Under the pieces are notes generated by a model, which was not told the origin of the DNA, ran no database searches, and saw only the letters and a program-made list of their open reading frames with translations. From contig RDEW01000001.1 of assembly GCA_011109175.1 (NCBI GenBank), forward strand, positions 1,987,485-2,051,484: DNA of 64,000 bases. The letters run 5' to 3'. The translations under genes were made by a program, and so were the position numbers. This document shows, piece by piece, positions 49,671 to 50,647 of this stretch. The stretch's first letter is position 1. Every line of letters begins with the position of its first letter. This stretch comes from Dicyema japonicum. Its lineage: Eukaryota > Animalia > Dicyemida.

Positions 49671-50647
49671 ATGAGTGATGATAAGTCTGCAGTAATCCAA
49701 GTAAAGAAGAAATTCAAGACAGTGCATCAGAACGACAAATTATACAGAAATACAGATCCTCTGCGTGCAATACTAATATTAGGTGTGGAAAATTCAGTGA
49801 GAGACTTAACATTACTACAAATGCCAGTGGTATTGTTAGGAGAGAACTTTAAAGCATATAGAAAAATAAAAGTGGAGAACAGTTCATTTTCATTGTAAGT
49901 AATAATAAATAAATTAAGTCATAATTTACCAAAACAGTACAAACTAAAGGAATATGCCCCAATGGTATTTCGTTCCCTCAGAGAGAGATTCCAATTGAGT
50001 GAACATGTTTATCAGAAATGCATATCTTTGGCTACAGATTCTCAAATGAGTATATTTGACAGCAAAAGAGTTTTGAATTGTGATGGACTACAAGTGATAC
50101 AAATAGATGGTGATGCCTTAATGTCTATGCTTCAGTGCTTAAAACCTTATTATGAAGTATTAATTGTTATAATATTAGTACATTGTTGAGAGGAATGGTA
50201 ATGTTCTGCTACTACAACTTATTTCCTTATTTAGAATTACACTCAATGATAACAAATCATATTTTGTTATAACACGTGCACTATCGCCAAATAATGCAAC
50301 TCATTATATAATAACACCGCATTCACAGATTCGCATTTCAATTGGCTTGGATCAATATAATAATATTATTAAACAATTAACTAATGATCTTCAGGTTTAT
50401 TTTTAACTTTATTTATTAGTTCATTACTTCCAACAATATAAATAATTATGCTCTTATCCTCTCTACTACTAATAATGATCATACTTCTCATTCTGACTTT
50501 TATCCTATTCACTCTTTGGATAATAATCATCTATATTTTATTACTCTCTCCTGTTTCATCCCCATTAGTAAAACACAACTTTCATCACCATTATTAAAAC
50601 ACACCGTTAATAACATTATTCAAGATTTTAATAAATTATTCACTTGA
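49671..50647 (+). CDS. PIP4K2: PIP4K2 (type II PI5P 4-kinase)-like protein with degenerate catalytic motifs (301 aa, 4 exons)
   Basis: Exons 49671-49894, 49919-50156, 50179-50394, 50420-50647; introns 24, 22 and 25 nt. KLYRNTDPLRAILILGVENSV..L...QMPVVLLGENFKAYRKIKVEN...NLPKQYKLKEYAPMVFRSLRERF and LKPYYEYIVERNGNVLL match PIP4K2A [20 protein letters not shown]...FKAYSKIKVDN...[15 protein letters not shown] and YHQYIVECHGITLL. Confidence 0.92.

Follow-up and report, generated by a model that had tools for sequence, protein, structure and literature searches.

Positions 49671-50647 on the forward strand of a 64,000-nucleotide stretch of Dicyema japonicum DNA (the window, by which we mean the whole of that stretch) hold a four-exon gene of 906 coding bases and 301 codons, whose lone stop is the terminal TGA. 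Judged by homology, the gene is descended from a type II PIP kinase (PIP4K2). That it is an intact, spliced gene for a PIP4K2-derived protein without catalytic machinery, as a preliminary description of this DNA had proposed, is well supported by the homology, by the loss of motifs and by the open frame. The best explanation, to which we give a probability of about 0.5, is that this non-catalytic descendant of PIP4K2 would bind the intact type I PIP5K of the same genome via its N-lobe and would thereby damp PI(4,5)P2 synthesis. Under such a mechanism the N-lobe would engage PIP5K possibly as a homodimer, the binding would lower the output of PI(4,5)P2, and the degenerate C-lobe would have been retained for structure alone. 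We infer the expression, folding, dimerisation and PIP5K binding of the dicyemid protein, and a non-catalytic, PIP5K-attenuating role for it is plausible from its sequence.

When the exons are spliced in silico, the 301-aa protein shows no internal stop. The features of the gene, and the positions at which the motifs discussed below are found, are as follows.

49671..49894, forward strand: exon 1, with the ATG at 49671, encoding residues 1-74 and two bases of codon 75; it contains the type II-specific N-terminal helix and strand region
49827..49847, forward strand: V-V-L-L-G-E-N, corresponding to VML(hydrophobic)PDD of the PIP4Ks and standing opposite VMLMPDD of PIP4K2A in the alignment
49895..49918, forward strand: intron 1, 24 nt, GT..AG, containing an in-frame TAA
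49919..50156, forward strand: exon 2, with a conserved first half (KEYAPMVFRSLRERF region) and a second half that is the degenerate glycine-loop/beta-3 region
50091..50105, forward strand: Q-V-I-Q-I, where IIKT with its ATP-binding lysine would stand, placed by spacing from the exon 3 anchor
50157..50178, forward strand: intron 2, 22 nt, GT..AG, after PYYE
50179..50394, forward strand: exon 3, beginning with a part homologous to the hinge and beta strands of PIP4K2; its residues 37-52 stand in place of the DLKGS segment and are ~28 residues shorter than in PIP4K2B
50395..50419, forward strand: intron 3, 25 nt, GT..AG
50420..50647, forward strand: exon 4, the degenerate C-lobe, with the TGA at 50645-50647
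50441-50455, forward strand: NNYAL, at the MDYSL position, in exon 4
50543-50557, forward strand: TLSCF, at the IIDIL position, in exon 4 (positional only)

The frame had been described as intact, and this holds over the 301 codons with 0 in-frame stops in each exon. The splice sites had been called clean, which is correct insofar as all three introns are GT..AG, but the first intron as originally proposed was too long and is replaced here by 49895-49918. In a phmmer search against solved structures the homology to PIP4K2B reaches inside that longer intron, where HNLPKQYKLKEY is aligned, and HNLPKQYKLKEYAPMVFRSLRERF of the gene is also aligned to PIP4K2B by phmmer, the homology running onward from 49920. 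Intron 1 is therefore placed at 49895-49918. If the acceptor at 49936-49937 is used, no GT..AG pair keeps the frame. Removal of the 24-nt intron takes out the in-frame TAA and leaves the PIP4K2 alignment gap-free from KIKVEN to KEY, which rules out a ciliate-type code (TAA read as Gln) as the explanation of that codon. Retention of any single intron brings in a stop 0-10 codons on (for intron 2 a TGA after 10, for intron 3 a stop after 3 further codons).

Introns of this size are in keeping with the published genome of Dicyema japonicum (67.5 Mb, 377 scaffolds, 36.7% GC), for which a mean intron of 38 bp is reported (PMC6736024), and a 2026 survey names it alone, among animals other than myxozoans, as having introns shorter than 30 bp (PMC13644364). 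An intact type I paralogue in the same genome, L001, is interrupted by GT..AG introns of 23 nt, and so the introns of the PIP4K2-like gene are of the genome's normal kind. One of these L001 introns follows GYYM (L001:1401-1423), the same protein position as that of the 22-nt intron 2 after PYYE. The common position may be older than the type I/II split, or it may be a coincidence. A processed retrocopy or retro-pseudogene lying between LINEs was also considered for the locus and is ruled out by the host-type micro-introns, one of them at the position common with L001.

The conserved N-lobe of the preliminary description proved to be real and specific to type II PIP kinases. With phmmer against the PDB, exon 1 matched PIP4K2A with an E value of 3.2e-12, all 17 of its 17 significant matches being PIP4K2A/B/C, while exon 2 matched PIP4K2B with an E value of 8.8e-8 over residues 8-45 of the piece, again with type II only. 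Residues 1-40 of exon 3 matched PIP4K2B at E 0.0018 over 170-207 in the 1bo1 numbering, which is 147-186 in the construct numbering. Type I structures in the PDB are absent from the match lists of exons 1-3, yet they top the lists obtained for the other PIP-kinase loci of the genome. When the exons were scanned one by one with Pfam, exon 3 gave a PF01504 match of E 0.0049 and 16.6 bits, under the cut-off of 27, and exons 1, 2 and 4 gave no PF01504 match; the whole-genome PF01504 scan did not flag the 49671-50647 locus. Exon 4 alone carries no PIP-kinase signal by Pfam, by the PDB search or by BLASTP against the type I catalytic piece. The atlas look-alikes of this 75-aa fragment are bacterial PemK clusters, which we treat as noise, and a similarity of its residues 31-67 (50510-50620) to NAA50 acetyltransferase, at E 0.024-0.22, comes without the acetyl-CoA motif and is probably due to chance.

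Set beside PIP4K2A/B (PDB 1bo1, 2ybx), the protein shows significant similarity, in collinear order, in its N-terminal region, its KEY.PMVFR.LRERF strand and its hinge segment, the landmark positions occur in the same order and the termini match, the C-terminus by position only. PIP4K2A/B differ in having ~405-420 residues against 301 and in carrying the catalytic motifs, none of which is found in the dicyemid protein. Its variable insert and the tail past the IIDIL position are presumably shorter as well, the tail by ~16 residues relative to human PIP4K2, and the activation loop also appears to be shortened.

The second half of exon 2, which covers the glycine loop and the IIKT region, shows no detectable PIP-kinase similarity, and the glycine loop is unrecognisable; there are just 6 glycines among the 301 residues. 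When the spacing is counted upstream from the exon 3 anchor, the position of IIKT reads V-I-Q-I, so that the lysine is gone as had been claimed, and the nearest lysines lie ~12 residues upstream and ~14 residues downstream of this position. The ATP-lysine position follows the residue numbering of the human enzyme. The deletion of the DLKGS segment, estimated earlier at ~25 residues, comes to ~28 missing residues, and no DLKGS-like string is present. The distance from the exon 3 anchor (PIP4K2B residue 207) to NNYAL is 41 residues, as compared to ~69 from the anchor to MDYSL in PIP4K2B, the latter spacing being derived from the L001 alignment.

To place NNYAL, the last part of exon 3 was joined to the first part of exon 4 and the product was aligned pairwise to the same-genome loci with a local script. 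The earlier assignment of NNYAL to the MDYSL position is upheld, since it aligns to MDYSL/IDYSL of L001 and L003 with p ~0.008 and ~0.004, respectively, against shuffles. The best local alignment to the L001 catalytic piece is collinear and sets YNNIIKQLTNDLQFITSNNINNYALIL of this gene against YENFFNTLKRDSKVLESFKIMDYSLLL of L001 (p ~0.008). Exons 3 and 4 searched separately by BLASTP against the type I catalytic piece gave nothing, and only the joined stretch yields this signal. The catalytic Asp of MDYSL is replaced by Asn in NNYAL, and a D-to-A change at the MDYSL site is known to kill PIP4K (bioRxiv 10.1101/2024.08.01.606031). As to the claim that IIDIL reads TLSCF, the part that stands is the loss of the residue, as there is no Asp nearby (the 24 residues that begin at the LY anchor have none). 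The equivalence itself, in which LYFITLSCF is set against LYVAIIDIL of L001 by the LY anchor, is positional only and statistically unsupported. With the glycine loop, the ATP lysine, DLKGS, the MDYSL Asp and the IIDIL Asp all absent, the protein as predicted cannot function as a kinase. L001 has DLKGS, MDYSL and IIDIL intact, and its catalytic segment can be aligned with zebrafish PIP5K1A over 100 residues (E 7e-31); because of this, the erosion of the type II gene is specific and goes beyond the fast evolution of dicyemids.

The genome search covered a 67,542,437-base assembly in 377 pieces, in which the PF01504 scan gave 8 other loci. L001, L002, L003 and L004 are closest to type I PIP5K1A (E 7e-31, 1e-19, 8e-11 and 2e-9), with type II always behind, and L001 (G000:C224:128492-129417) is a clear type I gene that keeps all motifs. 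On the basis of motifs, L007 resembles L003, L009 and L010 resemble L004, and L012 is PIKfyve-like. A second, catalytically intact PIP4K, the search for which had been suggested as a check, was found in the assembly neither by PF01504 nor by type II sequence searches. When exons 1 and 2 were run against the assembly no credible second locus was seen, the only other match being noise (E 0.26), and a vertebrate PIP4K2B fragment found only this locus, which doubles as the positive control of the search. The published assembly recovers ~77% of core genes and has 4.1% gaps (PMC6736024), and so an active PIP4K2 could be unassembled and its absence is not proven.

Turning to the constraint on the gene, a random codon would be a stop in ~7.8% of cases at this base composition, and the chance that a shuffled exon is free of stops is 0.0016, 0.0014, 0.0026 and 0.013 for exons 1 to 4. 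The coding frame of every exon has 0 stops as against 2-15 in the other five frames, with the exception of one reverse frame of exon 1 that has 1 (the two other forward frames of exon 1 have 9 and 5). This difference argues against neutral decay. The GC content is 0.34 in exons 1-2 and 0.27-0.29 in exons 3-4, for a flanking background of ~36%, and the lower value in exons 3-4 suggests a weaker constraint on the C-half. As regards the definition of a pseudoenzyme, the gene is an enzyme homologue that has lost the catalytic residues, and the evidence for its maintenance consists of frame integrity and splice sites. A word search for relatives with exon 1 gave no match, while an exhaustive representative protein search with exon 2 gave 11 weak matches, mostly short fragments, and no dicyemid relative.

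The PIP4K2-like gene sits between LINE-type repeat insertions. A non-LTR retrotransposon is present at 45173-47006 (+), ~2.7 kb upstream of the gene, with Exo_endo_phos_2 at E 3e-6 and RVT_1 at E 9e-17. An endonuclease-like open frame lies ~200 bases downstream at 50856-51206 (+); it has no Pfam match and was read by eye.

What the gene has kept is the N-terminal third. The conserved part, residues 1 to ~115, is essentially the mammalian inhibitory module, and in mammalian PIP4K2 the N-terminal third forms the dimer interface. Residues 1-135 are basic, with a pI of 9.6. The patch that contacts PIP5K has stayed hydrophobic and reads V-L-L (M60V, L61 unchanged, M62L). The PDD of the motif has become G-E-N, whereby the proline is lost, DD is changed to EN and one acidic residue is replaced; the dicyemid VVLLGEN thus stands against VMLLPDD in PIP4K2C. 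In mammalian cells a kinase-dead PIP4K restores PI(4,5)P2 control, and PIP4K2C cut short at residue 132 inhibits PIP5K1A no less than the complete protein; this inhibition needs VMLLPDD, although DD-to-NN alone did not abolish it (Wang et al. 2019, PMC6619495). In PIP4K2A, M60/L61/M62 make contact with the interface at which PIP5K dimerises, and they block its membrane-mediated dimerisation (Duewell et al. 2026, PMC13416441). A role as regulator only would be consistent with the dicyemid data, because the stretch that is conserved corresponds to the ~132 N-terminal residues which in mammals are enough to inhibit PIP5K1A, because the M60/L61/M62 contact patch reads V-L-L, because an intact type I PIP5K (L001) exists in the same genome, and because the locus is the sole type II locus of the assembly with no active PIP4K partner found. 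The last point also makes the role of a heterodimer subunit, as for PIP4K2C, unlikely.

Among the closest parallels are PIP4K2C and engineered kinase-dead PIP4K2A, in which non-catalytic inhibition of PIP5K via the N-terminal motif dominates or suffices (PMC6619495). PIP4K2C, however, has every catalytic motif and occurs alongside active isoforms, neither of which is true of the dicyemid gene, as there is no active type II gene in the assembly. The truncated PIP4K2C 1-132, a frameshift mutant (Wang et al. 2019), corresponds to the conserved part of the dicyemid protein, but unlike that mutant the dicyemid protein keeps a full-length degenerate C-lobe under frame maintenance. Other observations count against the PIP5K-brake reading. 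The change of PDD to G-E-N may have altered PIP5K binding. The action of PIP4K on PIP5K needs PI(4,5)P2-dependent membrane binding, and much has changed in the activation loop and in the C-lobe, which faces the membrane. The AT-rich exons 3-4, the LINE-type flanks and the core-gene recovery of ~77% also weigh on this side.

If the gene does not act on PIP5K, it might be a functionless relic. A dicyemid is a parasite of roughly 30 cells, and the kinase role could have been lost along with reduced signalling, leaving an open frame that drifts while nothing depends on the protein. We regard this as unlikely, albeit with some evidence in its favour, as all catalytic motifs are erased, the C-half is AT-rich, Asn-rich and without detectable family signal, and the surroundings of the locus are rich in repeats. 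Yet with ~8% of random codons being stops, the survival of four stop-free exons and three precise GT..AG micro-introns would be very unlikely after a divergence sufficient to erase the motifs, and the N-terminal third is about as similar to vertebrate PIP4K2 as a constrained region in a fast-evolving lineage would be. The maintained frame running through the altered C-lobe would also fit a pseudoenzyme that is functional but does something else than attenuate PIP5K, for example as a sensor or adaptor that binds phosphoinositides, or as a homodimer serving as scaffold for other partners. The basic N-half (pI 9.6) and the replacement of PDD in the PIP5K-binding motif by G-E-N would fit such a role, and a proximity-labelling study describes catalysis-independent PI5P4K interaction networks (PMC13218151). 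However, the sequence has no pointer to a specific alternative partner and its conservation is highest in just the stretch to which PIP5K inhibition has been mapped, so that we consider this role improbable.

A still different view would be that the model is incomplete, with alternative exons that restore the motifs, or that an active PIP4K2 is unassembled and the present gene is a low-activity accessory paralogue like PIP4K2C. The ~77% of core genes and the 4.1% of gaps in the assembly leave some room for this, but we hold it to be highly improbable. From one homologous anchor to the next the DNA is unbroken coding sequence, which leaves no space for an exon with DLKGS, and the neighbourhood of the gene is free of N runs. 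The two ends of the protein coincide with those of PIP4K2, as judged for the C-terminus from position alone, and the PF01504 scan and type II sequence searches give no second type II locus.

The gene bears on an active debate as to whether PIP4Ks are mainly PI5P-clearing enzymes or mainly allosteric brakes on PIP5K. The growth function of PIP4K in the fly needs kinase activity (bioRxiv 10.1101/2024.08.01.606031), whereas the control of PI(4,5)P2 and of the insulin pathway by PIP4K in mammalian cells is independent of it (PMC6619495). PIP4K was found in all metazoan genomes in a survey of ~23,000 proteomes, and the sponge enzyme is as active as the human one (bioRxiv 10.1101/2024.08.01.606031). 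A full-text literature search returned no description of a natural PIP4K pseudokinase, and PIP kinases are not mentioned in the text and supplements of the two dicyemid genome papers. The further claim that an animal's one type II PIP kinase has here been reduced to an obligate pseudokinase, surviving only as a PIP5K brake, is one that we put forward tentatively and with more doubt than belief. If true, the gene would be a natural separation-of-function allele in which the scaffold role of PIP4K is selectable without PI5P 4-kinase activity. It would then provide independent evolutionary evidence for the scaffold role and, at 301 aa, a compact natural tool to test it. The dicyemid gene may thus show the non-catalytic role of PIP4K2 on its own.

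The presence or absence of class I PI3K bears on what a PIP4K-derived regulator would regulate in Dicyema japonicum. Scans of the assembly for PI3K_rbd and PI3K_C2, which had no working positive control, gave nothing, and class I PI3K may be missing or may have diverged beyond detection. The PI3Ka accessory domain was seen at only two loci (G000:C345:897785-898093 and G000:C35:314177-314501).

Among the type I-like loci, two also look catalytically degenerate. L009 (G000:C90:456173-459394) has INYSLL and no DLKGS, and L010 (G000:C341:99942-103187) has IGYSLL and IINIL, while their sisters L002 and L004 keep the catalytic aspartates. Going by their motifs, the four look like a lineage-specific family with two dead members. 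L009 and L010 differ from the PIP4K2-like gene in being type I-like with intact sisters, where the type II gene is without a sister; they are like it in belonging to the same genome, in having lost catalytic aspartates and in having the same micro-intron architecture.
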